The notes: generated by a model from the letters alone, not told the origin. DNA of 64,000 nucleotides from Marsupella aquatica (GCA_973895155.1 OZ316899.1:16147974-16211973); one strand, 5' to 3'; numbered from the stretch's first letter, positions 5,097 through 39,071 are shown. Numbers and translations: made by a program.

Positions 5097-8000
5097 TGTG
5101 ATGCCTTGCCAGGATCACGAAGTACTTAGTTAAGCCTAAAATAATGGCTAAATAAAGATAATGGCTAAATAGTATAAGGTAGGAATAAAGACTGAAGCCG
5201 ATTGCAATGTGTTATAAGGAGGATTGCGATAAGGTAAGATCCAACGGTCGCGATTGAGCGGGATTAGGGTTATGACCTAATCCAAGCTTGATCAGGCAAG
5301 CCATCAGGAGGCGGCTTCGCAGGGAGGGGACCGACATTCTGTACACTTGCTCATTTGCTTGTTCGATCAACCTACACTAGAAGAAATCCACCCGTTTTGA
5401 GACCTAGAGATGTGTGACTTGTCCAAGACCTTCATGAAATAGCGACTCCAAGGTTGTTGGTGTCATGTTAGTCACACCTTCTTGACTGAGTTTTGGTGAA
5501 GTTTTGCCAAGTCATGTTTACAACTTTTAGGTAAGTTGCAACTATAACTTAGTTAAGGCAATTAGGGTGAAGTTATACAAGTGACTCTACATTAGAGTAC
5601 AACTTATGAGACCACTACATTTGAACCCTTAAACCTTAAAGTATGGGATCCGCGACCATATACATATGATTTTGGATACACCATATGTCATTCCACATCA
5701 ATTTAATAATAGTTTAGTCATACCATTCTAAACCATAATTACTCCTGACCCCATTTAGACACAATGAAGCCTCAACCCCATTCAAACAAAAAAGGCCGGC
5801 TTTGTCAAACCTTGTTATTAACCTAACTTAATGCTTTTTGTAGTCAATCTCTAATTTTCCCCATCTTTACCACTTGTCCTACCCTCTATACCAGCCATAG
5901 AACATTGGATGTCCAACTACTATATTTTTGCATGCTATATATATATGCATATGAAGAAGGCTTGATCTTAGATAGTATTATTTTTCTTTTAGGCTCATCA
6001 TTTGTGCTCTTAATTAACGAACATGCAACAAGGCTATTGTAAGGTTAATCCTAGCCCTGTGCATTCATTTAATCTTTGCTCATATTGTGTTGTGTCAAAT
6101 TTGCTTTAGGGTTTACGGCTCATGTCAACGCAAAGTGGTCGAGTGTCACTGGGTTCAGTTCTCTCACTAAGTGTTAAGGTATGCATTGTGCGTGAGTTTG
6201 CCTTTGGATACGAGTTTAGGGTGGGCGGGTTTTTCAACAGGAAACACACTAGCAGAGTGCAAATGGGAGTTGAAGGTGCGCGGGAACTCAGAGGTTTTTG
6301 TCAAGGAAAAACTCAGATGTCCATTGTGCTTACCAACAACCATCATTTAGGGCGAGGAGCTTTACGGACTTCACTCCCGCTTGTCGTGCTTGAGTGTACA
6401 TCTGCCCTCTATACTTTTGGGAGCTTTGGACTAGAGCAGATGATCGGAAGCCTTGGACGAGAGACACAGACTCCAATATCCAGCTCGTAGATCAATCCGT
6501 GATTGATTTTGTCAGGTGTGCGACCTTCAAGCTCTTCTCCATTGTGCGCTTCCAGTTGAATGCTGCAAGGTCTGAATACTATCGGGAGCTCGCATTTGGG
6601 CCAAGGTTTAGGTATTTTGTCATTGGAGGACTGAGCTGTGGGTTTAGGCCAAGTTACTATGAGCTTATGTTGTTGCAACTGTGACCGATAACTGAGGAGT
6701 TGCGACCAGGAGCTTATTTTGTTGCAGCACTGCCGTGGGCAAGGGGTTGTGGAGAATCGGGGAGCTGCGACGTAGAACTGAGGAGCTACGAAAAAGTGGG
6801 GAGTGATCTTGAAGGCCAACTATCTAGCGTGAGGTGGATCATCGTGGTTGCAACAGCGATCGGGCCCTTTTTTGCATTGGCATTGTCAGTAAGACAATCT
6901 GTGGACACGCGAAAGAGTCGCAAGGAGTTGTTCTTGTGGGCAGAGATTGGAGTTCACATTTGGTAAGTCCACCTCAATAATGACATACATTGTAGGTGGA
7001 GGCAATGTTATGGCCTCTTGTTGTCTTTAAACTCATTCTCCACTCACAAGAGAATGAGGATTGATTGTGTCCTGAGAAGCTTAACAATTTATGTTGTTGA
7101 CATCATCCACATTGAGTGACGGTGAGCTCAAGTCAGTGAGTGGCCGATCGAAGGGGACATTTGTGCTCTTCATTACATGCTCGGGCAAGAGTGATTGATC
7201 TACTAATCGCAAGCGCTCCCAGGTATCCATTTGTCGTTAAGGCTTGAAGCTTCACCGGGAGCTGCGACCGTCAGTGGGGAGGAGTTGGAGGTTGTGTTGC
7301 GCTCGTCTTTGGAGGCGAGAGGTGAAATGCCGTAGCTTTGTTCAGGTGATGCAGCCATTTTTCTCAGGCAACAAGGTAAAATCTATGAGCTTCAAGCTGT
7401 TGGTGAGCTAAGCAGCCACTGTGTTTATGCAAGCTATTGGTGTTTATGCAATCTTTGTAACTCAATCGTGTGACAATAATCTTTGAATCTCCACTAGACT
7501 TGGGAGTGATAATGCGGACTTGTGTTTGCCGCATTTCTTCAATTTCTTAAGGCAGCGGGAAGGAATAGGTTTGTGAGGTACAGGATACACATGTATATGA
7601 TTCCCAACGATTCCTGCTAATGAATTACACGTTTGGTTGCAGCAAGGAACAAAAGATTGAAGCCATTTCTTGGGTCTCCCGGAGTAAGGTTTAAGGTCAG
7701 TAAGGATTCCAGTGTCTCACTCATAGTTGAATTCTTGCACCTCCGCTTGCATCTTCCAAACATTCTACTATGAAGATAATATAGGAATGAGATGCAAGGT
7801 TTTAGGTCATGTTTCTCTTTGCAGGACGGGTTTTCTCCGCTTTGCGCGTGGGAGCTGAAAACTTAGAGTTGAGGCATCAATCTTTAAGGGAGCTTGGAGT
7901 GGAAGCCGACAACTTGGAGCGGGACTTCGAGTTGCTGTTACTAGCTACATTGGACTTGTGAGTCATGGTTGCAGCTACGTCTTGGAGCTGAAACCTGGGA

Positions 8001-11000
8001 GCTAAAACCTGGGAACTTAGAGTGGGCCAACGCAAGCTCTATACAAGGCAGGAGTTGTGCAATTTAAGGTGAGAGTCAGTAGCTTTTGGGATTCACCATC
8101 TTTCATTGTTGTCATCGCTGCTCTCGTCTATCGCTACGGCCGATTGCTGCTCTGCATTTTTGCCATGGGTTGCCAGTCTGCCAAATGCTGAGTGAGACAG
8201 AGGCTACAACCTGGGTGCGCGGAGGTCCTCACTAATCCCATGGTTTACAGTTTGCAAAATGTGACAGCCCCAGTGAGAGCTTTCGGCTACAGTGAGGTAA
8301 AGGGTGTTCTTACTCGTGCTACAGTTGCTTTGACTTGCTGAGTTCCAGCAAATTGAGTTTTAGGTGCGGTCAATGAGAGTTGAGCTGTTTGAGCTGCAGT
8401 CACTGAGAGTTTAGAGTTTGAGCTACGGTCACTGAATGCTGGCATTGAGGTGCACGCCCTTCACATTGATCAGTGAAGGCTACGGCCGGGGTGATTATGA
8501 CAGTGATTCCAATGCAAACCGTCCAGGTAGGATTTATGTGACATTGTGTACAATGAAAGTGGCCCTGCTTATTGACTGCTTAATGTTTATGTTGCAACTG
8601 GCAGCAGATGCATGGAGTGCAGCGAAGGGAGGCGCTATTCATGTGAGCTGACAGGGGAGCTGGACTTGTGAGCCATGGTTGCAGCTACGTCTTGGAGCTA
8701 CGACCTATGAGTTGTGGCTGGAGCTACGACTTGACCTGAAGGTGACGCATGAAGTGTAGAGTAATTTTACAATCCATGAATGTTTGTACTCAATGTTATA
8801 GATGCATAGGGTGGGTGTTGCATTTTGTTACTGTAAAATGTCCGTGATGTCGTGAGATGTTCTGTTCCTTGGATTGAGACGATCTCTGCATCAGCAATTA
8901 TTGTATGTCATGTCTCACCTCAGATCATGAACGTGATTGGTTGGAGACTATATTAATTGGGGAGGAGCTCCAATCCGTTGTCATTGCTTCTCAGTGGAGT
9001 GTTCTTTTAGTAAGCTGCAGGGGGCAACAGAGCGCAAGTTGCTGCTTGCAAGTTCCCGCCTGCTACCTGCTACCTACGACTTCCGCCTGAAAGGTATGGC
9101 ATTCACATATGCGCATTTCTGGTCTCCAGTTGATCAATGTACTTATTCCCGCTGCCTTGAAATGGACCTCAAATTTCCATGCTCCAATACGCTACTGTGA
9201 TCGAAGCCTATCACGATGCAAAAACAAAGGAGAGGCAGAATCAGAGCCCGGACACCAACGTGTACAGATATCATGAAGCTAAAATAGAGGAGAGGAAGAA
9301 TCAGTGCTCGGCTCGGACACCAAAGTGTACAGACATCATGAAGCTAACTACAAGCTAGCAGATAGGTCAAATGCTCCCAAATAGAGTCAGAGGAAAGTTA
9401 CTAAAACTACCTTCACAACTCTCAAGTCTGGAAAGTAAAAATCAGCCTGAGACACGCAGCAAGAACTGTTGTTTGCTAGGAACTGTTGTCTGCTAGGAAC
9501 TGTTGTCTGCTTTCTTGGGGATCGTCATGTGTATGTAACTGCATACACATTCTACCTGAGGGGAGTATGACTGTACACCTCAGGTAGAACCGAGTACTAT
9601 CTATCGCATGATATAATTCCTCTACAATTTTGTATTAATGTTGCCTAAGTGCTTTGTTGTATTGTTTTGGTTGTAATGACGTCACTTGCATTTCATAGTC
9701 AGTCTTAGTTGGTTGGCTTGGTACTCATTTGCTTTTCACTCCCTCTGGCTAGTGAATTTGTCTATTGTTGCTGAGTTTTTTGCGTAAGAACTACATGTTC
9801 TTCACTTTCTTGATTGTACTCTCTCCCCTATGGAAGACTATTGGCTTGGGCTGCCAGCCTTCTCTCTGTTTCAATTTGTTGTCCCTATGGTCAAACACTA
9901 CTTGGTTAGTGGTTTTGCTCTATTTTTGTCTGTTTTGCCTTCAAGTAGGACATGGATGAATTGAGCTTGGAGGCAACAAAATGGCAAGGCCGAATCTGAA
10001 TGGTTCCAAAAGTATGTGTGCTGCATTTTGATCTGGAGAACCAATTGTAGAGTTGACTCTTTTGAATGTTGTAGTCTATTTTGCCTTGAACTGGGCCATG
10101 GATGAATTGAGCTTGGAGGCAGTTTTTTTCATTCCCATCTTCCTGAAGCCTTGTTTGCTTTCTGCCACCCCCTTGTGGTGGGGACTTTTCTTGAAAGATC
10201 CTTATTGTGAACAGAGTTTGTACTTTGATTATGAAGTTTGACTGAGTTTCTGTTTACTGAAAGAATGTGACTGTGTAAGAGTTTCGTTTGGCAGTGGATT
10301 GGTTGAAGCACTTCCTGCTAGTGTGTTGTCCACAGCTCTTCAACCAGCTTTTGTATTCCTTGTCTTTCACCACTTATGGTGACATCAATTCAGCTAAGAC
10401 CATAGAAGGTTCCAAAGCATCTAACTTGTAAAATCGCATTCTGTTACATCAAGGACTAAGGTGTTGGGTGCCAAAGGAGACAACACAGCAAACGTGCTGA
10501 AAAGACTTCAGGACTGGGTTCAACAAGGTAGTGAAGGTGCTTAGAGCCATAGTAAGTATGCATTTTGTATCCTTTCTCTGTTGATGTGAGCTTGTGCATA
10601 GTAGGAGTTGTAGTTGGCAAGAGTTCCATAAGGCCAAATATGAATAGTTCCAAAAGTATGTGTATGAACCAAGTGTAGAGTTGACTCTTTCTAAATATTG
10701 TAGTCTCTTTTGCCTTCAACTGGGCGATTGAGTACTGCTAGTGTATTCACCCCAATGAGCAATGCTTCTCCATTCAATCAGGTGAACGTACAGTTTGGTA
10801 GGGCCAATGCCATGTGATCATGTACTTGCTCTATAAAATTCTGAAGATATAAGCATTGTCTGTTAGACCAGGCAACTTGGGAGTTGCTAAGTGTCACTTG
10901 CATCTGAGGGGCTACACCAGGGGCATCAGTGGAGGTTCACTTGCACAACACGACAACCAGTGAATTTTCTCTCTGCTGCAACCTGCAAGGTGAGACTTTC

Positions 11001-16021: not shown

Positions 16022-18299
16022 GGACCGCGGAAGCAGCTGTCAATCGATTGAGGGAGGTGGTCAGGGAATTGTTCAAGCTCCCTTTTTTTGGTGGAATGAC
16101 CACGGTGAATCAGGCGGCCAAGTTCTGGGGCTGTTTGCTTGAAGAAGCACGGGAGCTCATACCAACTTACGAAGACATCGAGCCGGAATGAGTAGCAAGG
16201 GAATGGGCGGAGCTCGCTCGGTTATGGGGAATTGATAAGACGACATTTGTGGGAACGGAGGAGGTACTTGAGAAATTCATATGGATTCCCACCAGTGCCG
16301 AGCTTGACAAGTTGCTGATTAGAGAGAATCGAGTTGTTGGAATTCAGGAGGCGATTAAGAATGTTGGGCAGCCGGTGTGGGAGTTGAAGGGTCACACTTT
16401 GGCTTGGTCCAAGGAAGCCATTCTTGGAGATTTCTCAAGAACTGAAGAGATGAAGCGTAAAGGTAGTTCGGCTTCTGCAACACCAGCTAAGCGGAATCGA
16501 TCGGAGAGGCTGGCCAAGGCTGAAGCCGTGCCAGTTTGTGATAGGGCAGTGGAGGATAAGTTTATGACGGGTTGGGCGGATAAGCTACCTGCCAACTTAC
16601 AACTACAGTTTGCACAAGAAGAAGATGAGGTCTTCTGTGCTATCCAGGATAACAAGTATTCTGGATACATGAACGACACTGGCTTAGAGGGATTTGTTCG
16701 GTTACCATGGCGGTTAATTGACATACCAGATGAAGATCTATTAGACTTTGTAGGATGCTGGGAGGCTTCTTCTAACATGACACTGATGTATGGGAAGGTG
16801 GTGGAATTAACGCCAAGTGAACACTAATTGAATCCGTCTTTGCTCTTCCACAAGGGAATAAAACTAAGGTGGAGCAGCGAAAGACATTGCCGGATAATCA
16901 ATTCCGATCATTTCCAGGGCCCTCTACTAAGAATGGGTTCTTTAGAAATCAATGCACTAATCCACATGTGGGGCAGTTGATTGATTTCTTACGAGTCACG
17001 CTACACTGTACATTGCCAAGAGAAGAGATCGACAAAGCCCAGGTATTTTTGGTGGAGACTATCGATTCAAGCCAAGACTACAATGGCTATCTTTTAATGC
17101 AGTTAAAGAAGGCATTGAATGAAGAGAAGCAGAGTGTTGGGGAAGGAGAGGTATCCAGACTAGGGTACCATCTGCAATTACTTTGCCAATATGCAAGAAG
17201 CCAGTCTTTTGCACCCATGTTACCACTATAGGAGAGGATGCCGATTACAGCACGAGTGGAGGAGGACGAGCTGCCCCTGAACAAGCAACGACAAGAGAAG
17301 AGGCCGGCAATACAAGCAGTCCAGGGACAGGAGAAGAGGCCGACAACACAGGCAGTCCAGGGACAGGAGAATTCCCCTCTCAAGGAACCAGAGGTGGTAA
17401 CATATGATGTGGTGAGAAATCCGTTGCGACGGCCTACTCGTAATAACCCATATGCAGGTATTCAACTAGTAGAGAGGAAAATGACTGCCAAAGAAAGAAA
17501 GAAACGACATGAGCAAATGGATTTGGAGTCAGAAGACGAAGCTGAGGCCGTAGTCAGGAGAGGCCAGTCCTTAGAGCTTCTAGCCGGTCCCGAGTGGAGG
17601 AACCGGTGGAGGTAAATCAACCAATGGCAGCCCAACAATACTCAATGGAGGAGATTGGGGGCTTTGCAAAAGAGGCCAACATGCTCGGTAGTCAGGTTAA
17701 TGTGGATGACTATGACAATGATTATGTCAATCATGGGGAGAGACCGGTGCCAGGAGTGAGAACGTTGGGAAGGTTTTGTAGAAGACTTCCCTCAGTCTTT
17801 TATGGCAAGCCGGAGGATCAAAAAAACCCAGAGTCTCCGCCACCGGACGTGACACCATTGGAATTTGACCGAATGAAGGAAGCCGAGGCAGGTTTCAAGG
17901 AGAAACTCGACAAGTGGAGGGCCCAAAATGACATACAGGAGCGGCAACTACTAGGCGGTGATTGGCCGGAGGAAATAAACGGCTTAGTGAGAAGCAGGCC
18001 GTGCCTCTCACTAACTTCAATCAGTTACGAGCAGAAGCTTGGGAGAAACGGCCTCATTGGCAGATGCCAGTATCACCTGGCAGGTCAAAATATGCGACGG
18101 ATTGGGCTAGGGAGTATGGAGACATGTGTGGACTTCTAGCCTTAGAAATCTTCGGCAATGAGTTAGAATCCAGACCATTTCTTAGAAAGGAAATGGCTGA
18201 CCAGACAAGGCTGGAGGAGGCAATGACGTTGGAGCAATTAAAGAAGGAGGAGGTAATCGCTCGGCTTTGCTCCATGGAAGCCAAAGTTGCTAAGATGAA
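16022..18299 (+). pseudogene. Middle part of the LTR-borne accessory ORF (probably starts at ATG 5272)
   Basis: Chain of frameshifted ORFs 15973-18321, homologous to 48-1160. Continues in frame at 26425. Confidence 0.7.
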
Positions 18300-18620
18300 A
18301 ACAAGAAGCCTTAAGGGATGAGTCCAAAGCCTTATTTCTCTTTTCAAAATCTTCATGATATTAAAAAGTGTATACCAAAAAACCACCAAAAAATGGTATG
18401 TATTTTCCAAACTAGACTCAAGAGAATTTTACCACCAAAATCTAAGCATATCTTATATGATATTCTCACAATTGTATAAACCTTGAAATATGCACTTTAT
18501 AAAAGTAATCAAAATCAAACTCATCGATCAGAGTTTAAGTCAAACTCAAAGTTTTACAAAATATAACCCAACTTAAGCCCAAGTGGTTTCAAATGCTACG
18601 AGTCCCTCTATTTATCTAGT

Positions 18621-21600
18621 CTAATCCAAAGGGACCGCTTCCCCTTCCTCGGTTCCAGAAGTCCCTGTCGTCAATTCTAGAACAATTGTGGCATCGTCAA
18701 CCACGCTATCCTCTCCGGCCTGAGGAATGTCTTCCTCACTCTCCTCATCCATCTCCCCCTGTCCGTCTTCCTCTTCAATGTTATCTGCAAGGTTAAGAAT
18801 CCTCCCTTTCAACACACTGCTCTGTCGCTCGTCAATCTCAATGGCAACGCAATGTGTCCCCATGGCCAAGGAGGAGGTTGTCCCAGTCCCTGATCCTGAA
18901 CAAATATCCAAAACCCAGTCTCCAACCTGACTAAAATGACTCACTTCCCAATCTAACAATGCACGTGGTTTCTGATAAACATTCATTGCCTTGTTATCCC
19001 CGTTGTGTTTCAGCTTCTTAGTCACAGCTGCGCATACAACCACATTGTTCCTTGATTCATTTGTGTCAAAATTGAAGTGCTCCAATGACCGTTTACCATC
19101 CTGGCTGTGAAAGCCAATTGTAAAGCACTCAAAGTTGCTGTTCAATCTTGGTCCACCAGCATTCTTCACATTATCCTTAACCCTGAAAAGTCACAAAAAG
19201 TCAAGGAGTTATTTAAACTGAGAAACATGGTTCATGAAATCATGAATAACTAATAGTTGTTTTTTTCAAAAACAAATATTTCTTACCACACACAATTCTG
19301 GAACCCTCCATTACACTCCGCTTTCAAAACGGTCTTGATGGCCTCATATTGGTCAAGGCTGTGGTGAATGATAATACGCCACAACTTTGCAGTAGTAGCC
19401 ACCTTGAACGATTGGACCATTTTTGTGATCTCCTCAGTTCCCCATCCAATAGTGTCTTCATGAAGACATCCAGGCAATGCAAACCCGTAGGGAATATCCA
19501 CTAAAGCTAATGTGTAAGCCCGACCCGGAACCACCTCATGTAATCGCTGAACATCATGAGTAAAAATATCATAGTGCACATCACCAAACTCTGGATGCTC
19601 AAACGAATTTGGATGAAGTTCCCCCTCTTGGGTTTGCCGACTAGAAGTCTTCATGGATAGCCAATTTTGGGCTTGCACAATATGCGCATTGAATTTGTCC
19701 GGGAATGACTTGAGATCTTTGCCTTCCTCATCTCCCTTCTTTTTCCGGGAGGTGGTATCTTTCTACAAAAAGGAACTGTAGAATTAGAAACAAGGATTCC
19801 AAATATTAAACGAATTCAAACAATCATTCGAAGAAAGGTGACAGAATCTTACCCATGTCTGGAAAACAGGTACGAAATTCTTAAGCACATTGTCTGTGCA
19901 ATGCTCAGGGTACTTGGTTTTACAACCTGACCAACTCTCCTCGTGTAGACACGTGAGGAAGGCCTTCTGCACCTGCATCTGAAATTTGTGTCGAGTAAAT
20001 TCGTGACCCATTTCCTGTAAAGAGAGTTCTTTAGTAAGAACTCTCTGTAACACTGGGCAAATCATATCAGGATCTTTCAAGGCCTGCATGTGTCTCCACT
20101 CTGTTAATTTCATGTCCTCATAAGGCAATTTGGCATCTCCAGACTTAGAGACTTTCTTCTTGCCTTTGTCTCCTTTTTGACCTTTGATCTCACACATCTC
20201 CCACTTGTCACAAATCTGCCTCACAAATGACCACACAGGATCTTGTCGGAATGCCAACTGAAATAGGTTATCATTGGCATTAAGAACCTCAGCATCCTTT
20301 TGTACACCCCAATCCTTGAGATTGATTTTAGTAGCACACTCTTTCTTGAAATCCTGGTTGGACGACAATCCATTCTCAACAAATCTCATGTGAATATAAT
20401 TTACTCTCTGGATTGTCGTCATCTGTTGTCAAAATTCAGAATCAATATTGTGACTCCACGCCAGGTTTCTTGCCTCTTGCACACTCAATCCCGCAAATAT
20501 CCAAGATTGCACTCTCCGAAATGCCTTGTTGTTAGGGAACTGAAGAGCAAGGTCTGCTTTGGCACAGGCTGAATGGTTGCCCCCAATCACATAATAATGG
20601 TAATCACCTTTCCTTGAAAAATCAAAGTCTTGCCTAGTAGCACACTCCTTCGGATCCACCAAGAGGACAAACGGAGCTGCAAGTGGACTGGCACCTACAG
20701 TCTTCATCCGCAAGGTCAATTGGGTCAAGAAATATGGTTGGATGTGTCGGACCTGGTAAATGGGCAAGCCCACAGCCTTCTCTCTCACTGGAGGGTAAAG
20801 TTGACCAATGTCAACGGTCACGGTCTCCTCTTGAACACCACATCTTCCCAGAATCTCCTCCTGGTACAATACCCGTGCATCCATTGACATTGATTGAGCC
20901 TTTTGCTCCAAATGCGTTGGAATTTTCTCCAAAGTCTTCTTTTTTGACTTTGTAGCACTGGGCTCGGTAGGCTCAGGAGTCATAGCAGGTCGCTTCTTTG
21001 AAGAAATGCGAGTTCTAGTCGTACCTTGTGCCGACCCACCAGTCAAAGCCGTTCCCTGGGATGATCTGCCAACTTGAGATCCCCCTCCAGATGCTGCTGC
21101 TTCCCGGGAGGTTGTAGGCGCTACCACGGTCAAAATATCATTGGGTAAAATGCTAGGCCTGGATCCAGAAGGAACACCGGAAGCCCCAGATTTGGGTGGA
21201 CGACTTACTCCCTTCTCTGCCGACCTTTTCCGGAGAATCTCTCTTGATTTTCGGATTGCACTCTTTAAAGTGCTAGCGTGAAATTCAAACACAAAACCGG
21301 AAATCTTTCCCACGACGTCGTGGTAACGTTCCTCACTCGAAAGAGACTTGATAGTCTCAATGATGCTATCGATGTCCTCATCGAGATAGCAGGTGGTAGC
21401 CGTTCCAGAAAACCTCTCCACATCCACGACAATCAAAGTTGATGTTTCCTTCGTTGTGATCAACATGTTCACAACTTCGTCGCCCCGTCGAAATACATCG
21501 ATGCGGCCGTAATTTACCCACCCTAATGCCCCCGATGGAAGCCCCTCAAATACACACAGCATTAGGAAGGGCTTCTTCCATATTTCCGTCCCTAAGGAAA

Positions 21601-21682
21601 TCGTCCAGGATGAGTTGTGGAAGTCCGTCAAAGGATGGCGCGAAAAGATGTCATCCACCAGCTCTTCCTGCGACATTGTCAT
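18621..21682 (-). CDS. ParB/Srx-like domain fused to a beta-class N6-adenine/N4-cytosine DNA methyltransferase (~955 aa, one in-frame stop)
   Basis: Exons 21682-19853, 19762-19287 and 19182-18621, joined by phase-compatible GT-AG introns. ParB-like YYVIGGNHSACA, motif IV LVDIPYG, CVWVK, YQKP, motif I VLDICSGSGT, CVAIEID. TGA at 20429-20431. Confidence 0.85.
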
Positions 21683-22461
21683 GTTTTTGCCTGATCTTCA
21701 AACCTGAGAACATACCACAAAATCAGTCCACTTCAACCCCAACCTGCGAGACAAAGTGCCACAGAACCAAGGAATGTGCCAACAAATGGCTACTAAAACC
21801 GTGTCCTTACGGATCTAACAACGCTCTCGGCCACCCCAGGACTCCTATCATGAATTCATGAAGGGAGTCTCCCTCTCGCTCCGACCTTCATGAATTCATG
21901 AAGGGAGTCTCCTCTCTCTTTGCTTGTACACCTCGGTGATGCAGAAGGGTATTTAAAATAGGGTTCGGAGGGGGGTGACGTGAAGAAATCACCCAGGGCC
22001 TAAATTACTACCTAAAACAGGATCGAAATGAAGTGCGACCGCGACAACTCGCGACACGTCGCCGATGAGTGCTGAAAATGGCACGAAATTGGACAGCAAG
22101 ATTGTTTTTCATTCTTTTACAAAGGAAATCCAAATGACATTGAGTGAAAATGAATGGGCTGCCCCGTGTTCCTTGGTTATACATACTAATCACGGATCAG
22201 GCGCGACTTAGTAAAATTAACCCCGAATCATGATAAATCAATGTTTTCGGGCCAATTATTCATGAATATTTCGGGGTATTAACGGGAAAAAGCTTGCAAA
22301 TTTCATGAATATTTGATATTTTTGAAGTTAAAAAGTCCCAACAATCCGTGAAAAACTATAAATAGGCTCGTTTATTCATGACTCTTGGTCATTATTTTGA
22401 GAAGATTTGTTAGATTTTACTGATTTTCTGAGTTTCTTGTCAATTTGCACTAGTTTTTCCA
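21683..22461. promoter_or_regulatory. Divergent promoter region with TCATGA palindromes
   Basis: Lies between two head-to-head genes. TATAAATA at 22357, perfect 20-bp palindrome CCTTCATGAATTCATGAAGG at 21885-21904, eight TCATGA sites. Confidence 0.6.
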
Positions 22462-25400
22462 ATGGCGGCATGTTACGAATCAGATGATTATTCAGATGGA
22501 GTTTCTGATGATGTTTCATTGCCAGATGGCCCCTGCACAGTGGTTGGCCCAGATATCCCTGGAATAACTACTGTTTTAGATATGCCACCCCCCACCCCTA
22601 TGAGCAAGTTAAAATGTAGTCCTTTACGACTTGCAATTAGTGGGAAGAAATCATTGGTCGGTGGTAAAGAGAGGTTAGGGAGCTCCTCTGACTCCTTGGA
22701 GAGTATTGGTCCCCCTGGACGTCAAGTTGTATCTCCTTTGTCACCAACAAAGGACAAATTGGGGAGTAATCTGGAAGGTTCAATGCCTATTTGGATGTCT
22801 GGGAAACGGTCTCATGAATTCATGAAGACTGGATTTGGAAAGACGAAGAAGGCACTAAGTGGGGAAAATGACAGAGATTTTTGCAGTCTCCAAAGTGTTC
22901 AGCGGCTGAAGCAAATGCCAAAAAGTAAAACCTTTGGTAAGCCAACGTCGGAAACATTTCACAGGGGGATGAGGGAAGAAACTAGACGACCAGTGTTATT
23001 GAAAAGTATTCCAGAAAAGAATTCTAATGTGCGTTCCTCAGTTTTACCTAGGAGTCATGGTGTTGGGGCAGGGAGCGGATCAAGTCACGGAAACTCAAAC
23101 AGGGAAACCAACCTGGTGGAGAGGGACCCTAGGAAAATATTGAAAGGGTCCCTACACGGTAATGGAGGGATTTCTGAAATACGCCCAGGTATTCCAAGGG
23201 TGCATAGAGTGAAGGAAGAGCCTCCATCTCCGAAGGCTGCAGGTCTGGAATCTAGGCATGTTCAGAAGCAAATGTTGGTGACCATTTCATCATCGAATGA
23301 AAGCGAGTCTTCGGAGAGTGGGGAGGATGATGATGTTCCGGTGGCATCTAGTCGTTACAAACGTACGAGCAACGCCACTTTGTGTGAAACAAAGTTGAAA
23401 GAGGAGGATATCAAGAAAACAAATAGTAAGTACTGTTGTCAGAGTCATTGTCTCCTAAGTCTATCTCCAAAAGAAATTCGTGAGGCGCGTTCTAAATTTT
23501 TGAGGCAGAAATCTCAGGATCGATCTTTATCTTTGCAGTGGCTTATAAAGCGAGACGGAAATGAAGGAGGGAGGCAGACTATATCTTACACGTTTGGTCA
23601 AAAGAGTATTTGTCGGAAAGCTTTCAAGCTTATATTTTGCGTTGGCAATCATAGATTAAATAGAATTTTGAAATTAGACAACCAAGACTTAGGATATTCT
23701 AAACCAGTTGGACGCCCTCCATCTGTTAAAAGATTAGTCTTGGTCAGTTGGCTTAGGTCGTTTTTTGAGACACGCGTGGAAACATTGCCAAATAAAGAAG
23801 TTTCACATTTACCGGATAATTATTCAAAGCTGGAGGTATGGAAGATCTACGACTCCAACTATGCCAAGATTGATGAATCTTCAAAAATATCCTATCGACA
23901 ATTCTTGAAAGTTTGGGTTCAAGAATTTGGTCATGTGAAGATTCCTCCAGTCAATCGATTCAGTGCTTGCGCGGATTGCGAGGAGTTCAAATCAATTCGG
24001 GACAAAGCTGTCTCGGAGACCGAAAAGAGTAAGTTACTTACAAGTTTGACAAGTTTTTGTTTCAAGAATATGGCTTAACACATGATTTCTAATTTTTTTT
24101 GAAGAAACTAACAAGTTGTTTTTCCAGGGCGAGGGGAAATTATGTTACAAAAACATAGAGACCAACAATCCAAAGAACGTGAGAAACTCGCGAAGCATCG
24201 TAAGAAATGTTTTTCAAATTCTGATAAATATTTGGGAGTTGTCATTGATGGGATGGATCAGAAGAAGACAAGGTTGCCTCATTGGCCGCGGCCCCCAAAA
24301 TCGGTGGACGAAACATGTTTGATCCAAATGCACGTTGTCGGATGCCTGGTTTTCAATGGTGCACTATTTTCAAGAGTGTTTCTTAATTATCCTGTATTGC
24401 ATAATGATGGAAACTTGACAGTCACAATCCTGCAAAGGGTGTTTCACGAATGGGAAGAAAAGCCTGGTGGCTTGCCGCCTGTTCTCTATCTTCAACTTGA
24501 TAATACCAGTAGAGAAAATAAAAATAATTTACTCTTTGCCTATCTTCATATGTTGATTCGAAGAAAGGTTTTTTGGAAAATCAAACTAGGATTCTTGTTG
24601 GTTGGACACACACACGACCAAATAGATCAAATGTTCAGTCGATTTTCTAAACGACTAACAAGGTTTAAGGCATTCACATACGAAAGCCTATGTGATATTA
24701 TTTGTGAATCATATCAACCCCAACCAAATATCACTCTTTTAAAGGAAACATATGATTTCCGTCAATATGCCTTCTCAGATCCACCTTTAGTCATTGAAAG
24801 GATTCGAAATGTTACCTTCCACCACAAGTACAAATTTGCATTTGACAAGTTGGAAAATCAAGTTCCAACCCAATGGGGGAAGAAGTTTTCCACGGACTCA
24901 ACTTGGAAACCTGACGGAGGCGTGAAATTTTTGAGGGAAGAGGAGCTAGAAAAGGTGATGGGTTGTGCTCCCGGATTACCCCTTTTCAAAAAGGGGGATA
25001 AGAACGTTACAAGGACTCAACCAAATATGTCTAGTTCTTCAAGAATGACTTTGAAGGAGATGGATGATTCGTTAAATGAGATTCAAAAGGGAATACTTGC
25101 AGTTGAAACTTTATTCTCAGAAGAGGAAGTGAACTGGTGGAGAATGTTTTTTGAAGAGCAACGGGAATTGAATAAATCTTTGCTCCTTGATCAAAGACCA
25201 TTGATTTTCCCTTTTCAATGGCCACGCTCCCAAAGGGAGATTGTTGTTGCTGCTGAAGTTCCCAGAGTCCTTGTCAATGAAGAGGAAATTGAAGAGAGAG
25301 TATACGGACCTACCAGAGATATATACGTGGGTCCTTATCGGAATCAAGGAAAGATAGATGCAGAGAAGGAGAATATGGAAGGAGACTTTTCGGATCTTGA

Positions 25401-25860
25401 AGTCAACACTTATATTTCTGTTGCTGGAGAAGAATCGGAAACATTTTGGGTGGCCAAGGTGGAAAGAATTGACCAGCGCGACGAGTTCAACATTCCAAAA
25501 ATGATTTATGTTTTATGGCATGCTACAAAAACCGGGTCAGATCCTTGGAAAGCCAAGTACTTACCAGAAGTCTTAAACTACGAAAAGAAGAAAAGTGGTC
25601 GTGGGAAAGGAACTTTGAAACCAATATGGTTTCACCAAGAGCTTGATTTATCTTCAACGACTGTTTTTGCTTACAACTTCATGTTGACAAAATCTGATAC
25701 ATTGTACAAAAAGACAGTAGATCGAATCAAAATCCGATTGACTGAATTTTTGGCAGAAGAGAAAGAGCAAGAACAAGAGAATGGATCAACTAGAACCCCG
25801 CTAGGAGATAAATCTAGGGATATTTCGTTTCAAGAATTGAGGACTTCTGGATCTGAGTAA
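22462..25860 (+). CDS. Intact Sola-like (DUF7869-type) DDE transposase, ~1099 aa
   Basis: Exons 22462-24028 and 24128-25860 (GTAAGT..ACTAAC..CAG intron, frame preserved). Motifs FSACADC, VIDGMDQ, YLQLDNTSRENKN, FLLVGHTHDQIDQMFS. Confidence 0.88.
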
Positions 25861-26424
25861 TGAAAAGTAGTTATTGTTTGTGACATTACCATTGAAAAAC
25901 ATGGATAACTTGAAATTTTACAAATTTTCAAAATGCCTTTACCACTTATTCATGAATTCATGGTTAAAGTTTCTTGAGAAATTTGTAGTTTAATATTATC
26001 TTAGTGGGTTGTGTTTCAATTCAATTAGATGGTGTCATTTCTATTCTCCTTGTCTTCTTTTCACAATAATGTGTATCAGGTTAAGTTGTAGTAATTTATT
26101 TTCTGGTTTTTAAATGACAATGGCTTTTGGAGGTGATTTAGTTGTTGTTTCAAAAGACACCTCGTGTAATTGTGAGACCATTGTAGATAATAGTGTTGTA
26201 TTTGAGATCATTTATTGGTGGAATGTAACTTCAGATGAATTTGGTCATTTTTAGGTGTCAAAACATAGCTAGTTTATGTCATATTTTGTTCGCTCCATAT
26301 TTTTGCTCTAAAATAGGTGCTAATTTTTGCACTTTTTTTGACTTTTTCGTTGTTTTTCTGATTTTTTGGCTAGAGTTCCTAAAGTATGGGCTTGTTACTC
26401 ATCATTTAAGGCTTCTTGTTTGAA

Positions 26425-27945: not shown

Positions 27946-28088
27946 TGTTGTAACTCATACTTGAGTTAAGTCTACCTTTGGGATAACTACCTATGTAACT
28001 ACCCTAACTACTTAGGCCGTAGCCACATGTACATATTCTACCAAGAGTAAAGATGGAACCAACTCTTTGTCTCATTTCTCCCACAACA
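27946..28088 (+). repeat. 5' LTR (143 bp)
   Basis: Identical to 30766-30908. Confidence 0.97.
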
Positions 28089-30765
28089 CGTTATCAGCAC
28101 GAGCCTAAGACTGGCTGAATTTTTTTTTAGGCCATGACTGATTCACTCTAAGACGAAGAAAGAAGGGAAAAGACGTGATTCGAATGTGCCAAAGTTTTTT
28201 TTTGCGAGAGCTGCTTGAAGCGCTGCACGAGCAATTTTTCTTTGGAAGAAAGGCCAAGGAAGAATTGATCCCAGCTATGGTGAATTGAATATCAAGGCGC
28301 CATCTTATTAGGTGCACGCTTTTCAAGTCAGTATAGCAGTAAGGCAATAGCAACAGTCAGTCAGAGCCAATGTTGTTGACGCGTTCACAAATCTGGAAAC
28401 GAGCCAGCGATTGGAACTCCAGCCATTTCGAGGAGTCGGAAGTTGGTGGCCAAGGTGTTTTCTCACTCCCTGGCGAGCAAGACCCTCACACCAACTACAT
28501 CTTTTATTGATAAGATTTCTAGCGAGCACCAGCTCACTGACGGCTGGTCGTGAGCGCACAACAGATTGGAGTACGACAACCTACTCTATTTCCTGTGTTT
28601 GCTTCCAGTTCTACTCGAGTCTACCGCTGGAGGCATTCGAAATGGACGAAGCAGTAACAGGATGTTGTGATTTCTCCCTAAACCCTTTCCCGACACTACG
28701 CTTTCCCGACACTATGCTGACAGAAAAGCAGGACAAACATGGGGAAATTAAACCCGTTGGTCGCATCACTGGAAAACGAAAGAAGGATTTGGAGCAATCG
28801 CGTAAGAAGTGCAAAAAGAAGCAAGTGAAGAAAGTCGCGACTTACAGACCATAGAAAGTAGCGACCTCCACTTCAGGCAGCGAGATCATCACACAAGCAA
28901 ACCGATCCAAGGCGCAGATCACAGCCTCAATTCCATAAGGAACTCGTAAGGATAGCAGGAGATAAGGAAATTTTTCTTAGAAGATTCGAAGAGAACTCAA
29001 GAAGAAAGCAGAACAGAACGGAAGTCTATCCCCAACCGAGGATCACAAGATTACATTCTTCGTTAGTCATTGATGAGTCTTTTGCCCTTCGAGAGTAACC
29101 GATCTTGAAAAGCAGCATTCCCCTCCAGGGTGAAAAGGATAAGAAGAGCAAGACGACAGCAATAGAGAGAAGACGATCGAAAAGCGTAGGCAGGTCCCGT
29201 GAATTACCCTCATTCGCCGTTGCCCCTTCTGGAGAGCAACGATGGGTTTGTTCGAGAGCAGCTGGTACCCTGAAGGAAGATGATAAAGAAGAGGAAACCG
29301 AGCTACTGGATGCTCTAGTTTCTAAGCCGTACTGCGATGATGACGGCCTTTCCTACCGGCATTCTCACCAGACTTTACTATGTTGATGGAGACACCAAGA
29401 GCTTGATCGACTTTACACATCCATGACAATGGAGATTGAAGGAAGATTTCACATTTAGGGAGCACGAACAAAAGACCCTCGGAGAAAAGAGGATAAGAGC
29501 ACGAAGGGAACGCGCGCAGCAAAGAACAAATCTCGCAACAAAAATGCTGAAACGTCGAGAAAACGTCGAGAACATACCGCTAAGTGCAAACCCTCCTTAA
29601 TTGCAAAACCCGTCAAATAGATTTGCGTATACAAAGAACAATGTGCACTGAACCAGGGAAACACACATACTAAGAACGGGGACGAAATGGCATTAAAATG
29701 AAAGATATCTATTGGGAATATTACCATATAAGAATTGCCATTCACAAATTCAGGGGGAGAATTGTTTTTCCCAACGTGCCTACTGCACTTAAAAGTTAAG
29801 CTCCGTGCCTACTACACATGGAAGCCAATGAGTGCCTACTGCACATGGAAGTAAATGACAAATTGAGGGGGAGACCTCAAGTAAGACTTGACATCAAGCA
29901 ATGTAACCCATGGGATGTGCCTATTGCACAAGTGCCTTTCGCACCAATGAATACCTAAAAATGGAACTCTATTCCATGCATATGGCAAATCATGAAATCT
30001 AAGGAATTTTTATAAATGATTGAATATGGTGTTAACACAATCACTTACCAATACTTGATGAGGTATACTGGATATTAAAGTACCATATGATAATATGAGG
30101 TACAGTACCAGGTCATAAGGTACCATAAGGTGAGACATGGCATGGTAAGGCACCATAAGAGATGGTGCGCCATACCCCAATATGATAACCCTACGTTGTG
30201 GATATGGTACGTGATGTGGTGCAAATAGGTTATGCCCACACCAAATCTAGGGTTGGACACCCAATCCAATTCCAAGGCCATGGATTACACCATATCATCT
30301 TCGTTTTGTACTAATACTTTACTTTGTCATGGCATGTAATCGGTGACCATCAAGGAGTCTCCATTTCCAGATTGGAAGGAGACACGAGAAACAATCAACC
30401 AAGGAAGATCTTCAACAAGCCTATAGTGTTGACAAACACCTTAAGAGACTTTGTAGAAATTACACATACACTATATTCTTAAACCCAATTATGTTACACC
30501 CATGGGGATGGTAATACTCTTTCCTCCCACAAAGAAAGTAGGGGAGGTTTTAATGAGGTTACATCCCCCACTTACACTTTACCATGCAACATGAATTATA
30601 AGACATCTATTAGGAGAAGCTTGACATTCATTTATAGTAGACTTGAGATGGCTACACCATTTATAAAATAGGCTAGACATAAACAAAACCTATTGTATAC
30701 CACTGAATATACCCAAAGTAGACTCTTGATTGTAACATTTCAACCCCAATGTTACAAAGGGGGAG

Positions 30766-30908
30766 TGTTGTAACTCATACTTGAGTTAAGTCTACCTTTG
30801 GGATAACTACCTATGTAACTACCCTAACTACTTAGGCCGTAGCCACATGTACATATTCTACCAAGAGTAAAGATGGAACCAACTCTTTGTCTCATTTCTC
30901 CCACAACA
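30766..30908 (+). repeat. 3' LTR (143 bp)
   Basis: Identical to 27946-28088. Confidence 0.97.
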
Positions 30909-31423
30909 CAATTTCCATTTCTGTGCAATTGTTTGAATTGAGTTGGCCTTGTTGCCTAGTTCACAGATTCTTCCAGTCATGGCATTGTGTGTTGTGATAC
31001 TTGTTGCTTGATCGATTTGAGTCAGATAGAGCGACTGCAAAGCTATACGATCGCATTGTCTTGATTGGAGACTGCCAAATCAAACTCTGAGAGAAAAGTG
31101 AGGATTGAGAGTGTTTTGTTGGTTAAAGTGTGGGTTGAGTTGGTCTGAGAAAAACCTTCAGCCGGCTTAAGAGATTAAGCCGTAGAGGTACATTTCGGGG
31201 GCAGAATACAAACATACCCAACGAAGTCAATTGAGAATTAGGCGTCTTAGCAATACACAATTTGCAAGCCCATTGCAAGAATCGGTCCAACATAGTGTGG
31301 ATTGAGAGTAGACCGTGTATCCAAGCCGAATGACAGCCAAACCACCATAAGCCGACCATAAGTAGGGGTTCATGGCCGGTTGTAGATAGTTCTTGGGGTT
31401 AGAGGGTTGGGAAACGCACCACA

Positions 31424-35399: not shown

Positions 35400-36064
35400 A
35401 AATACACACGCACATCTCTTGCCAAGGCTAACTCCTGCAATACTAGTTGAAGTTTGTTGCTTATAAACGTATCTGCATGAAACCCATTATTATTGCCATT
35501 GAAGCAATCACAAAACAACGTCAAGTATTCGGGGTTAAAGATACTTTAATGAGGTAAATCATCAAGAAGGATGGTGTTGCTGTCATTATAAAGTGCATCT
35601 GTCCGATCTCCATTTAAAACGAGGTCATCCCAAATATTTTTCAGTAATTTCACAAAGCATTTTTTCCCTTTGTTTCTTCCAGCCCCATAAAATATCCCAG
35701 TCAACAAGGCTTTCGCTTCAGTTCTCACAAAGACAAATTGATGCTTCTTGTTGGGAAAGACTTTCTCCAAAATCTCATGCACGTTATGATATACAGCACA
35801 AGACCATATCCCCACATCAAATGTCTGAAGACACCATTCAACAAAGCTCCGCATTCCCGGTCTTACATATATGACTCTACTCTTTAGAAACAACGTCTCC
35901 CCGTTTTCAGTATTTTTATCTCTAAGAGACTTTGCTCGCACACCCAATATTTGCACAATATGTAAGACAACATTCATCTCATGTACAAGCAGTTTACGAG
36001 GAACGGTGTTTTGTATAATAGTTGCCATATTGTATGTTACAATATCTGCAGAGTGACAAAACAA
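35400..36064 (-). pseudogene. FCP1/NIF-like HAD phosphatase domain (degenerate)
   Basis: RKLLVHEMNVVL (DxDxT position degenerate), YVRPGMRSFVEWCLQTFDVGIWS, SNTILLDDLPH. Confidence 0.75.
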
Positions 36065-36180
36065 TAAATGAACATCAATATTGTAAAGTCAAAGCAAGAG
36101 CATAACATCAACTATGATGCATTGCAGCGTATGGAAATTTGACGATAACCTATTCCACACGAGAATGGTGTAGATCTAAC

Positions 36181-36780
36181 TCAAATCATGACGATAAAGC
36201 TTAGAACAAATTTCCTCCTTTCAGCATCCATGCCCTTTGCTTTGAAATCAATTGGCTTCTCCTTACTCTGGTAATCGGCAAATTTCATGAAAAACACTCC
36301 GGAGTTGTAGTCATTGGTTTGAAGAGGAATGTCTTTACAAAAGTTTCTCAGCCACGACATAGCATTCAGTTCTTTGTGAGTTCTGAACATGGCTTCATCA
36401 TCTAGATATCTTGCTAGGTTCTCAAGAACTTCAGGGTTATCTCCATGCAACGAATCCAAAATAATAGTCCAGTTTCTTAAGACCCATGTCAATGACGACC
36501 AGTGCCCAATGGTTATGTCCTTGATAAATAGGGACCATGACCATCTCTACATCAGTTAAAAAGTACTCCAATTTTGAGGTCCACATTTAGACGTCCTAAT
36601 ACTTATATCCATCTCGAGCAAGTTTAGAATAGAACCAAGTATCAACAGATGAACTTGCGGGAGCTCGCTGCCCGCGGATTCTGCTCTCAAAGCAATCAGA
36701 CCAAAATAAGCATTCAGAATTTTAGAAGTTATCCATTGCTCAGGACTTGGACATGCCATCTCGCGGCAAGTTATGACGCA
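36181..36780 (-). pseudogene. Ulp1/C48 SUMO-protease domain (frameshifted; catalytic Cys appears as Ser)
   Basis: WITSKILNAYF, MVPIYQGHNHWALVVID (36490-36545), LDSL, IPLQTNDYNSGVFFMKFADY. Confidence 0.85.
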
Positions 36781-39071
36781 TCCACTGATTGTCGACAAAA
36801 AAAAATCCTGATCCAAGTTAGGGTTGAGGCAAAAGTCTATTGCCACATCATTGTTCAGGTTAAGAGAAGTGGGAAAGAGTGAATTGGCACCTGCCTCATT
36901 CGCAGGCTCCGCTGCAAGTTCCACAACAACATCACCAAAACGTTTGATGATGGGCTCAACCTCGTAGGGACCCTGATTTTCTGCCCAAGTGTGGGGAGTG
37001 GATGGATTGACGATGTTAACGGCTTCTTGAACTCTAGTTACAACCCAAAGGTAATCGGAAGGATCCTTAGACACGACCGGTGCGATATCATTTACAATTG
37101 AGTCCACCTCACCAAATGACCCCACACGAGGCTCGCATAGAGGGCTATGAGATTGTGGAAGAGATAGAGCTATCCCACCATCATTGTGTTCTTCCTCCAT
37201 GAGAGGTCCTTCGGAACTCCCTAAGCGGTAAATTGATCTTTGGGCCTTACCAAATTCCCAAGGACGGTGGATCTGTTTGCTGACATTAATCATACCGACA
37301 CAAGGATCAGAAAATCTGTTATCATCTTCTAAACGGGTATGATGAGAGATTGTTCCAGTGATATGATAGTGCCTCCCTTCCTTTGTGCCACTTGCATTAG
37401 AGTTTTGCGTTGAGCTGCCTTCCCCTCCTAGAAGTTTCCATAAGGATTTTGCAAATCGTGTGACACCCTCCACTGACTTGAGATTCTTGGCATAAGTCGT
37501 GAGGTCCATCACATTCGCCCTTTCCAAACAAAACAAGAAACATTCCCTTTCCAGAAGAAGGGCATTCTTTAAAACTTGCCCACCAGTAAAGAAATCCAAC
37601 ATAATTTCTTCCTTTTTGGAAAATTGAAGAATGATTGCCTTGATAATTCTGCTGGGCTTAATGTTTGATGTAAAGGTTATGCCACCGGGGGTCCAAAAAG
37701 GAATGAGTCTTTGCAAGCAATCTCCAAGAGCAAATTTTTGCTTTACTGCAACCTCTTGCTTGGAAAGGCCAGCGTAATCTTCTTTGGCTGGTCTTGCACG
37801 CTCAAGCTGATCCATGAATTCAGCCAAGAAATGACCTTGAAACCCTCTGAAATGTTTTTCCCAATCCGGTTCTTGTTCCTGGGAGACTCCAAGGAAAACA
37901 ATGGACTCAATAATACCCGACATGACATACGATGACCGGACTTCTTTCACACTCTTCCAATAGCTTCCATACTCCAGATGAGCATTATAAATCGAAGGTA
38001 GATCAGTGACAGCTTCAATAATTCTGGCCAGCAAGAGACCTGGGTGCACAAAAAACACGACAGTCACCAAGTCGTTGGCGGGGACATTCACGGTAGTCTT
38101 CAGGAAATTCAACAGGTCCGATTGTGTCCAAGTATTATGAATTGAGTGTGTCATATTGACAATAGCAAGTGATGCCATAATCCTCTCCCTACAACTTGTC
38201 AAATCAAAAGGAGGCTCCGAGGAAGCAAGAAGGGGTCCCAGAGTAAAATATTTGATATGGATCCATTCTCTCATGGAAAGTTCCCCCAAAATTCTTTTGG
38301 TAAATATTTTTGTAACCTATTCTTCAAAGGTTCCGACATTTTGCAAAGATTTTGACTAAACTCTTGAAATAAGCATTGTCAACCATTGTGCAACATCGAT
38401 CCAATTCTTCATTGGTGAAATTAAACTCGTGGACCACGTCTGACCAAATGGCCCCAACATTGAAAACATTTTTGTAGGTCTCACAATAGTACCGCAAGAT
38501 TGCACCTTTGAGCTTTTCCGTATACTTGGCTTTCATCGCAAGATTGGACATTGAAGGTATATCTGTCCTTGCATGTTTTCTCTTCATCAAGAGAACCTCT
38601 CCTAATTTAACTTTATTCAAGATGGAGGTAATGTCGGATTCTTGTGCCCCCTCAAATACCCTTCAAGAATGTCGTCACCGTTAGCTGTTTTGCTTCCCTC
38701 TTCTTCCCAGTCATCTCTCCATTGTTGTCAGGTAAATACCGCACAACCAACTATTGCAGACGGACATCCATAACTTATAGAGGCTCTCTGATGCAAAAAA
38801 GGATCCAGTTGTATTTGCTGATGCTAATCACTTTCAATGTGACTTTGGCCAACCCTTCGTAATCCTGAAACCCAACAACAAATGGTAAGAACAACACACT
38901 TAACCAAACCTTTAGAGAAGGTATCTTGCATGTGAAATCTCAACCAACACCTTAACAGGTGTTGACCCCGTGAGATTCTTGCACAACAAAATTTGAGGAG
39001 GTTGGTAGTCTCAACCAAAGATGGTTGTGTTCAAGAACTCCAAATGATTTTCCTAGCGGCCATAGTCGAGT
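36781..39071 (-). pseudogene. Middle of the second ParB-MTase-like gene: divergent beta-class MTase fold
   Basis: In ORF 36556-38289, IKPSRIIKAIILQFSKKEEIMLDFFTGG..NALLLERE parallels YQKPRALL..HFSQVGDWVLDICSGSG. The motif IV position reads LAIVNMTHS. Confidence 0.6.

Follow-up and report, generated by a model that had tools for sequence, protein, structure and literature searches.

A DUF7869-type (Sola-like) transposon family in Marsupella aquatica pairs its transposase with a conserved gene for a predicted ParB-methyltransferase protein

Transposons that carry an accessory gene with methyltransferase and ParB-like features are already known from brown, red and green algae. Dinatale et al. 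(2025, Genome Biol, PMC12477816) described the Ectocarpus element Sola1-1_Ec32, in which a 1104-aa ParB + N4/N6 methyltransferase gene lies on the strand opposite to the transposase, and the authors propose that the accessory protein acts on the very transposon which encodes it, by binding and modifying it. Red-algal Plavaka, Mutator and Zisupton elements with accessory genes of the PF01555+SET and ParB-like+2-oxoglutarate (2OG) oxygenase types, accompanied by inverted-repeat arrays, were reported by Petroll et al. (2025, 10.1101/2025.02.11.637652), and ParB-HTH-Dam fusions (HTH, helix-turn-helix) of chlorophytes and chytrids by Iyer et al. (PMC4738411). Here we describe a land-plant element which adds a new member to this kind of system, namely an 8.1-kb bounded insertion at positions 18300-26420 of a 64-kb stretch of Marsupella aquatica DNA (GCA_973895155.1 OZ316899.1:16147974-16211973; this whole stretch of 64,000 nucleotides is referred to as the window, and positions are counted from its first letter). 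The insertion, of recent date in this liverwort-type genome, is one copy of a multicopy cut-and-paste transposon of the DUF7869 type (Sola-like), and it holds a transposase gene together with an accessory gene of ParB-methyltransferase type. The novelty which the initial annotation of this DNA had entertained does not hold for the design as such, as the same arrangement has been published for the Ectocarpus Sola1 element and has green- and red-algal precedents; a published land-plant example of a transposon-borne ParB-methyltransferase was not found in the literature.

As in the algal class, the accessory gene resides within a transposon bounded by terminal inverted repeats (TIRs), is encoded on the strand opposite to the transposase and specifies both ParB-like and amino-methyltransferase domains. 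Sola1-1_Ec32 resembles the Marsupella element in being a Sola-type transposon with a single large ParB-methyltransferase gene in this orientation, and differs from it in its brown-alga host and its size (21.5 kb as compared to 8.1 kb); the likeness is drawn from the published description, in which neither a conserved catalytic motif nor an analysis of selection nor private palindromes are reported for Sola1-1_Ec32. The red-algal PAG2/PAG3 cassette, which moves between transposon superfamilies, likewise comprises a transposon-borne PF01555 methyltransferase and a ParB-like protein, with inverted-repeat arrays by the ParB-like gene. In that case, however, the two functions are specified by separate genes (methyltransferase+SET and ParB-like+2OG oxygenase) on EnSpm, Mutator and Zisupton elements, whereas here they are fused within a single protein and carried by a DUF7869/Sola-like element. 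Phage fusions, such as XPP57955.1 (427 aa) of Monoglobales phage CHVD 5762, show the same succession of a ParB N-domain followed by a beta-class amino-methyltransferase. These phage proteins are of approximately 430 aa, possess canonical motifs and reach the Pfam ParB_N profile, while the plant protein adds a PH-like domain, a long linker, a ParB HTH and a helical domain.

The boundaries of the element could be read directly from the sequence. A 4-bp target-site duplication, TGAA, flanks the insertion at 18296-18299 and 26421-26424, and TIRs of 33 nt, 85% complementary to each other, were located by repeat search at 18299-18331 (+ strand) and 26389-26421 (- strand); their outer 15 nt, AACAAGAAGCCTTAA, are identical at both ends and occur without mismatch nowhere else in the 64-kb window. 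Removal of the element together with one copy of TGAA causes the flanking coiled-coil open reading frames (ORFs) to fuse in one frame (...AKVAKMK|FDQQDLLAKQQELEV..., the residues across the closed frame being ...AKVAKMK|FDQQDLLAKQQ...), and thus all three features by which the initial annotation had delimited the element, that is, its TIRs, its duplication and the restored host frame, hold together with its coordinates. An empty paralogous insertion site was not found within the window. A 4-bp duplication is the length given for Sola2 (PMC3627910), and TGAA on both sides and 33-nt TIRs agree with the Sola superfamily; the designation of the transposase as Sola-like rests on the 4-bp duplication and the literature.

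The element contains exactly two large genes, arranged head to head and interrupted by a total of three GT..AG introns, and the claim of two such spliced genes was thereby substantiated when both gene models were read from the sequence. The transposase gene, on the + strand, comprises exon 1 at 22462-24028 (522 codons plus 1 nt), a 99-nt phase 1 intron at 24029-24127, also read from the sequence, and exon 2 at 24128-25857 (25860 including the stop codon), which contains the DUF7869 catalytic core with IDGMDQ, LDN and GHTHDQIDQ. Its predicted product is a DDE-type transposase of 1099 codons, of which the portion specified by exon 2 matches Pfam DUF7869 with an E value of 3.4e-50. In a 13-sequence alignment of plant and animal members it retains all invariant columns, including IDGMDQ, LDN and GHTH-x-x-IDQ, and all family-invariant acidic residues. 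Relatives of this DUF7869 transposase were encountered in liverworts, ferns, Chara, amphioxus, echinoderms, a sponge and corals; the transposase family is much broader than the gene pair and reaches animals.

The accessory gene runs in the opposite direction, on the - strand, and is composed of three exons. Exon A (19853-21682, 610 codons) covers a PH-like N-terminal domain, a disordered linker, a ParB N-domain with the peptide YYVIGGNHS followed by an HTH, and a helical domain. Intron 1 (19763-19852, 90 nt, GT..AG, phase 0) was read from the sequence, and in all homologous loci the ORF ends likewise just past the ...W|GT of this intron site. Exon B (19287-19762) specifies the N-terminal half of the methyltransferase domain, in which motif IV (D-I-P-Y-G) lies, and is separated by intron 2 (19183-19286, GT..AG, phase 2) from exon C (18621-19182, with the stop codon at 18621-18623; 186 codons plus 1 nt), which encodes motifs X (NVYQKP), I (LDICSGSGTG) and II/III, and an acidic tail. 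The junction between exons B and C, ...CVW|VKDNVKNAGGPRL, agrees with natural intron-less ORFs, namely the metagenomic relative L005 (...CIWAKPNVKNSGGPRL) and P0050. The gene amounts to 955 codons in total, and thus the length of approximately 955 aa originally proposed for the protein stands; its reading frame, however, is not open in the window copy, which has an in-frame TGA at codon 418 (20429-20431, - strand).

Profile searches and structure prediction place the C-terminal domain among the beta-class amino-methyltransferases. N6_N4_Mtase (PF01555) of Pfam matches exon C with an E value of 2.3e-7 and 31.4 bits, as compared to a gathering score of 26.7, while homologues score 35.3 bits (L005 ORF) and 39.9 bits (P0050), and the NCBIfam profile CcrM matches exon C at 4e-9; Pfam and NCBIfam searches with exons A and B returned nothing useful, and a PDB sequence search with exon B returned no methyltransferase. 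In L005 a single natural ORF of 374 aa spans the complete methyltransferase domain; it is 45-46% identical to window exons B and C, and its AlphaFold model (pLDDT 78, pTM 0.72) was matched by Foldseek to CcrM at 1.5e-14. VIA-align superposed this model on CcrM (6pbd) with a Z score of 25.0 and a root-mean-square deviation of 2.7 A over 236 residues, followed by M.BceJIV, MboIIA, HpyAVI, the rotifer N4CMT (Z 21.2), RsrI and PvuII with Z scores of 20-24, so that the best fold matches are beta-class amino-methyltransferases only; METTL3 and MTA1 trail far behind (Z of approximately 14). The initial annotation had recognized the succession YYVIGGNHS, DIPY, QKP and DICSGSGT and had assigned the protein to the beta class owing to the position of motif IV ahead of motif I. 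Sequence reading confirmed this succession, in the permuted order IV (exon B), then X and I (exon C) and II/III, and the class assignment is supported by this order together with the Rossmann-like fold of the homologue L005. For the methyltransferase, the profile search and structure prediction it had proposed as checks were in its favour, with PF01555 above its gathering score for exon C and CcrM as a fold match of the homologue model.

The canonical motif IV tetrapeptide, (D/N/S)-P-P-(Y/F/W), reads D-I-P-Y in the window, with the Asp, the second Pro and the Tyr retained, and the window DIPYG aligns on the DPPYG of M.BceJIV; across the family the motif is D-[IVLAFP]-P-Y-G, and the S-adenosylmethionine-binding motif I is intact. 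CcrM, M.BceJIV, M.MboIIA and M.RsrI (Z 25.0-20.7) share with the plant domain the fold, the motif order IV...X, I, II/III and the Asp of motif IV, and are distinguished from it by D-P-P-Y in place of D-I-P-Y, by an identity of just 17-23%, and by the eukaryotic, spliced and transposon-borne nature of the plant gene. Marchantia DN4MT1a/b and the rotifer N4CMT, a strong fold match, are also eukaryotic PF01555-type permuted amino-methyltransferases. Unlike the present protein they are host-encoded enzymes of demonstrated N4-methylcytosine (4mC) activity with TSPPY/SPPY motifs, without ParB and not transposon-borne. The motif of Marchantia DN4MT1 is TSPPY (10.1101/2021.02.12.428880) rather than D-[IV]-P-Y, and nothing in the present data ties this enzyme to the accessory family.

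The fold of the exon A product was read from an AlphaFold model (pLDDT 71) of the homologue P0004, which is approximately 43% identical. Foldseek matched this model to ParB/Noc (6sdk, E 1.4e-5, probability 1.0), and VIA superposed residues 330-613 on MxParB (7bnr, Z 9.1) as well as on CTP/CDP-bound (cytidine tri- and diphosphate) ParB and Noc, including the HTH domain; the ParB N-domain on its own matched PadC (6ryk, Z 8.8, 3.0 A over 96 residues), sulfiredoxin superposes likewise, and the ParB-family repressor KorB is also among the fold matches. The ParB module which had been proposed in front of the methyltransferase is thus supported, together with an HTH, by the model of this homologue. 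KorB of RK2 and the chromosomal ParB/Noc proteins resemble the P0004 model in combining a ParB N-domain with an HTH, and their palindromic operators or parS sites have a parallel in the 16-bp palindromes which the element carries in promoters and DNA close by. They differ in having the CTP-binding box GERRxRA, and as this is replaced by GGNHS in the plant protein, CTP-dependent clamping is doubtful. In the same model, residues 177-309 are disordered, while residues 27-153 (window approximately 21600-21200, - strand) form a beta-sandwich and a helix which are weakly PH-like (Z 4.3; Rtt106, TFIIH p62, PLC-gamma). An RFTS-like reading of this conserved N-terminal domain, as in DNMT1/MET1, was considered and not adopted, its Z scores of 3.2-3.4 being under the PH-like 4.3. 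The accessory protein is accordingly modelled as a PH-like domain, a disordered linker, a ParB N-domain with HTH, a helical domain and a beta-class (CcrM/MboIIA-type) amino-methyltransferase, in this order.

An exhaustive phmmer search of 1.84 billion representatives yielded 460 relatives only, and those named comprise Chara braunii, the liverworts Riccia sorocarpa and Calypogeia fissa, the fern Adiantum and Ginkgo. A word-indexed protein search with P0004 for full-length spliced relatives returned exon-sized ORFs only. Among the best 150 relatives 90 cover motif IV, and in 63 of these 90 the motif is D-x-P-[YFW], where x is I, V, P, L, A or F; canonical DPPYG occurs only among distant members, and QKP and G-[ST]-G are similarly retained. 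The ratio of non-synonymous to synonymous substitution rates (dN/dS) was determined for three locus pairs at exons A, B and C, and in the six of these nine comparisons with an estimable dS (it was saturated in two of the others) it amounted to 0.07-0.18, values which show strong purifying selection on the accessory gene. Because its motifs are kept and dN/dS is this low, the methyltransferase of the window lineage looks selected and potentially catalytic.

The pairing of the two genes is not confined to the window. L001, an 8.8-kb Logan contig from another sample, harbours the same head-to-head pair, with a transposase that is 61% identical over exon 2 and 54% identical over the C-terminal 236 aa of exon 1, and a ParB exon at approximately 43% identity. 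L008, an 8.9-kb metagenome contig, contains the pair at a transposase identity of 31%, with one intron-less 789-aa ParB-methyltransferase ORF and 28-nt TIRs that start with AACA like those of the window element. In the annotated genome of Riccia sorocarpa the DUF7869 gene R1sor_010795 (P0217) adjoins the N-4/N-6 methylase gene R1sor_010796 (P0067), the two being consecutively numbered on a chromosome-scale contig, which suggests that these neighbours represent the same two-gene element in a liverwort. The accessory gene is not a one-off capture, since the L001, L008 and Riccia sorocarpa loci keep the same pair, and by these comparisons it has remained tied to this lineage of transposases in spite of deep divergence. 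At the ends of L001 and L008 no clean second 4-bp duplication could be read, the flanks of the latter showing GATAT on both sides with a 2-nt offset. At the ends of L001 a perfect 20-nt inverted repeat was observed (1-20 and 8810-8829), with TIR-like AACAGGAAGTTTGAC from position 31, and this end repeat may be an assembly effect at element ends or a nested copy.

The stop at codon 418 is private to the window copy and falls just after the ParB N-domain, at a position where all homologues have Arg (NIDSEF-R-SxMTTIQRV). A mini-intron spanning it was considered and rejected, as there is no GT..AG of plausible length, the homologues align through this position with Arg, and other copies have CGA. 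Contigs of four public runs (X1, X2, X3 and X5) were aligned on the 3.2 kb at 18560-21760, and those over position 20431 in X1, X2 and X5 all have G on the + strand, corresponding to CGA (Arg) on the - strand, while X3 has no contig there. The run contigs over the accessory gene are short, fragmented and deep, as expected of a multicopy family. At 15 positions of this interval every covering contig, from at least two runs, disagrees with the window copy; 12 of the 15 are C-to-T or G-to-A in the window copy, 10 of these 12 in CG/CHG context, and the change that creates the premature stop is one of them, in a CpG. Such a pattern is the signature of 5-methylcytosine (5mC) deamination and looks like that of a silenced copy. 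As the Arg418 stop is private to it, the window accessory gene is a pseudogene of very recent date, in a gene that is open elsewhere, and the copy is probably decaying by 5mC deamination; the conserved accessory-gene design is real and, in the family, probably functional.

The element possesses palindromes of its own. A 16-bp palindrome, TTCATGAATTCATGAA, occurs five times in the 64-kb window at up to 3 mismatches, as compared to 1.03 expected, and all five copies lie inside the element: two in the divergent promoter region at 21683-22461 (21847-21862 and 21887-21902, with half-sites at 22259 and 22302), one in the second intron of the methyltransferase gene (19231-19246), one in transposase exon 1 (22811-22826) and one 3' of the transposase gene (25949-25964). 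The repeat comparison covered three divergent elements, each of which has a motif of its own at corresponding sites, namely the divergent promoter, the transposase intron or exon 1, the methyltransferase intron and the DNA 3' of the transposase. L001 has 14 copies of another palindrome, TTCAAGCCGGCTTGAA, at equivalent places (503-7861; 0.06 expected), among them one at 503-518 which corresponds in position to the copy 3' of the transposase gene, and L008 has 8 copies of a third motif in its transposase intron and promoters (2266-5916; 0.01 expected). The window palindrome TTCATGAATTCATGAA is absent from every fetched locus, and its outer TTCA...TGAA is common to the L001 palindrome. Fixed positions combined with sequence turnover are what a co-evolving protein-site pair would produce, and the ParB-HTH part of the accessory protein is, by analogy with ParB-type proteins, the obvious candidate reader of these sites.

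Taken as a whole, the best explanation, which we favour with somewhat better than even confidence, is that of a young element with a conserved ParB-methyltransferase gene that serves palindrome-guided self-methylation or self-regulation, this being the most likely mechanism we infer. The transposase and accessory genes would share the divergent promoter, and the ParB-HTH part would recognize the private palindromes of the element as ParB reads parS or KorB its operators. Such binding would bring the methyltransferase to the copies of the element itself, where it would deposit N6-methyladenine (6mA), as favoured by the Asp in motif IV, or 4mC, and such a mark may control the divergent promoter, set the timing of transposition or work against silencing by the host. 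The published algal parallels (PMC12477816 and 10.1101/2025.02.11.637652) come with a proposed mechanism of this same kind. The window copy is itself unable to do so, as the CpG C-to-T stop at Arg418 leaves at most a PH-like and ParB-N fragment, and it would rely on intact sister copies acting in trans. A stronger statement, which we put forward only tentatively and consider rather doubtful at present, is that intact members are active self-targeting writers of 6mA (or 4mC) in a land plant, with a recognition site that co-evolves by lineage.

Several observations weigh against this interpretation. Motif IV lacks the first Pro of (D/N/S)PP(Y/F/W), and ahead of motif I stands LD[IL]C in place of LDPF. 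The ParB module found no match by sequence in Pfam ParB_N or PDB searches, including one with an exon A profile, its GERRxRA arginine box is replaced (the window reads V-I-G-G-N-H-S-A-C-A), and its assignment, at fold level only, comes from the predicted structure of a 43%-identical homologue. The window exons were searched singly, and the whole-domain analyses were performed with natural contiguous ORFs (L005:2070-3191, P0004 and P0050) rather than with the joined protein of the window. At the predicted introns the contigs of the DNA-like runs have no joint, and no listed run is recorded as RNA. Furthermore, a degenerate relative of the accessory gene is present in the same window at 36556-38289, and the palindromes number only five and cluster at the promoter and not at the termini, a distribution that fits a repressor as well as a targeting role.

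Some of these points bear on the main rival explanation, in which the methyltransferase fold has become a DNA- or S-adenosylmethionine-binding module without catalysis and the protein acts as a ParB/KorB-like promoter regulator or as an assembly factor of the transposition complex, a possibility which we regard as real if unlikely. It would account for the replacement of the first Pro of motif IV by Ile or Val, for palindromes that gather at the common promoter and within introns but not at the TIRs, for the repressor KorB among the fold matches, for the 27 of 90 relatives that are missing D-x-P-[YFW], and for the decayed relative within the same window. Against it, lineages with no more than some 30-40% identity retain motif IV at its Asp, Pro, Tyr and Gly, together with QKP and the G-S-G of motif I, dN/dS is approximately 0.1 over the catalytic exons, and distant members have canonical DPPYG. 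Moreover, in solved amino-methyltransferases such as M.TaqI the residue after the Asp/Asn touches the target amino group via its main-chain carbonyl, so that a change of side chain at this position need not abolish catalysis.

That the enzyme might methylate RNA or protein in place of DNA is, by comparison, highly improbable. Eukaryotic N6A-methyltransferase clades have shifted to RNA several times independently (Iyer et al., PMC4738411), and METTL3 and MTA1 are among the folds matched, albeit at the far lower scores given above; the best matches, at Z scores of 20-25, are however all beta-class DNA methyltransferases, the domain forms one protein with a ParB DNA-binding module, and the gene is located inside a DNA transposon with private DNA palindromes. 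A one-off capture of a host gene (a Pack-type passenger) or an assembly chimera, for which nothing speaks except that plant DNA transposons often capture genes, is essentially refuted by the recurrence of the head-to-head pair in separate assemblies whose transposases are 61% and 31% identical to that of the window, the neighbouring genes of Riccia sorocarpa, the purifying selection on the accessory gene, and the contigs of four public runs that cover it, X1 and X2 at high likeness in all bins.

With regard to origin, the methyltransferase domain finds its best phage matches at 24-29% identity, among them true ParB_N + N6_N4_Mtase fusions, in keeping with the phage and mobile-element type of architecture that had been pointed out from the outset. 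Family-specific peptides revealed no relative in viral or prokaryotic genome collections, by which a recent phage or bacterial origin was rejected. The presence of the family in Chara, liverworts, a fern and Ginkgo indicates that it is old in streptophytes and argues for long residence and not for recent entry, and the suggestion that such elements might be a vehicle for amino-methyltransferases entering plant genomes was not upheld, given this age and the lack of a close viral or prokaryotic relative.

A second cargo-carrying transposon, of the CACTA/EnSpm type, was noticed in the region 35546-44220 of the window on the - strand. It harbours tnp2 transposase ORFs at 39881-41767 and 41958-43121 (PF02992 9e-40, DUF4218 1e-29), a SET-domain ORF at 43258-43599 (PF00856 1e-6), an NIF/CTD-phosphatase-like ORF at 35546-36064 (PF03031 2e-6) and the 577-aa ORF at 36556-38289, which retains a degenerate remnant of methyltransferase motifs X and I only (KPSRIIK...LDFFTGG), all on the - strand. 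This element recalls the red-algal Plavaka methyltransferase+SET cassette. Elsewhere in the window, a tandem repeat of three 189-nt units (47663-48230), a 144-nt repeat at 100% identity (27946-28089 and 30766-30909, 2.8 kb apart) and two pairs of direct repeats of 87-89% identity (57724-58077 and 63046-63398, 5.3 kb apart), which may be long terminal repeats, were also noted.

If the enzyme is active, land-plant transposons would carry their own bacterial-type DNA-marking system, which bears on the disputed existence and importance of 6mA or 4mC in plant nuclear DNA, and if the self-targeting interpretation is true, a transposon-encoded non-5mC mark would control the promoter of the element, time its transposition or oppose the CG/CHG silencing of its host. 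The element represents a compact test case, with two genes within 8 kb and one defined candidate site of 16 bp, and it belongs to a group of plants with model species, Marchantia among them, that are in wide use for genetics. Beyond the brief mentions of algal elements, the conservation of D-x-P-Y-G, a dN/dS of approximately 0.1, the co-divergence with the transposase and the positional repeats would allow the hypothesis of binding and methylation by the accessory protein to become testable.

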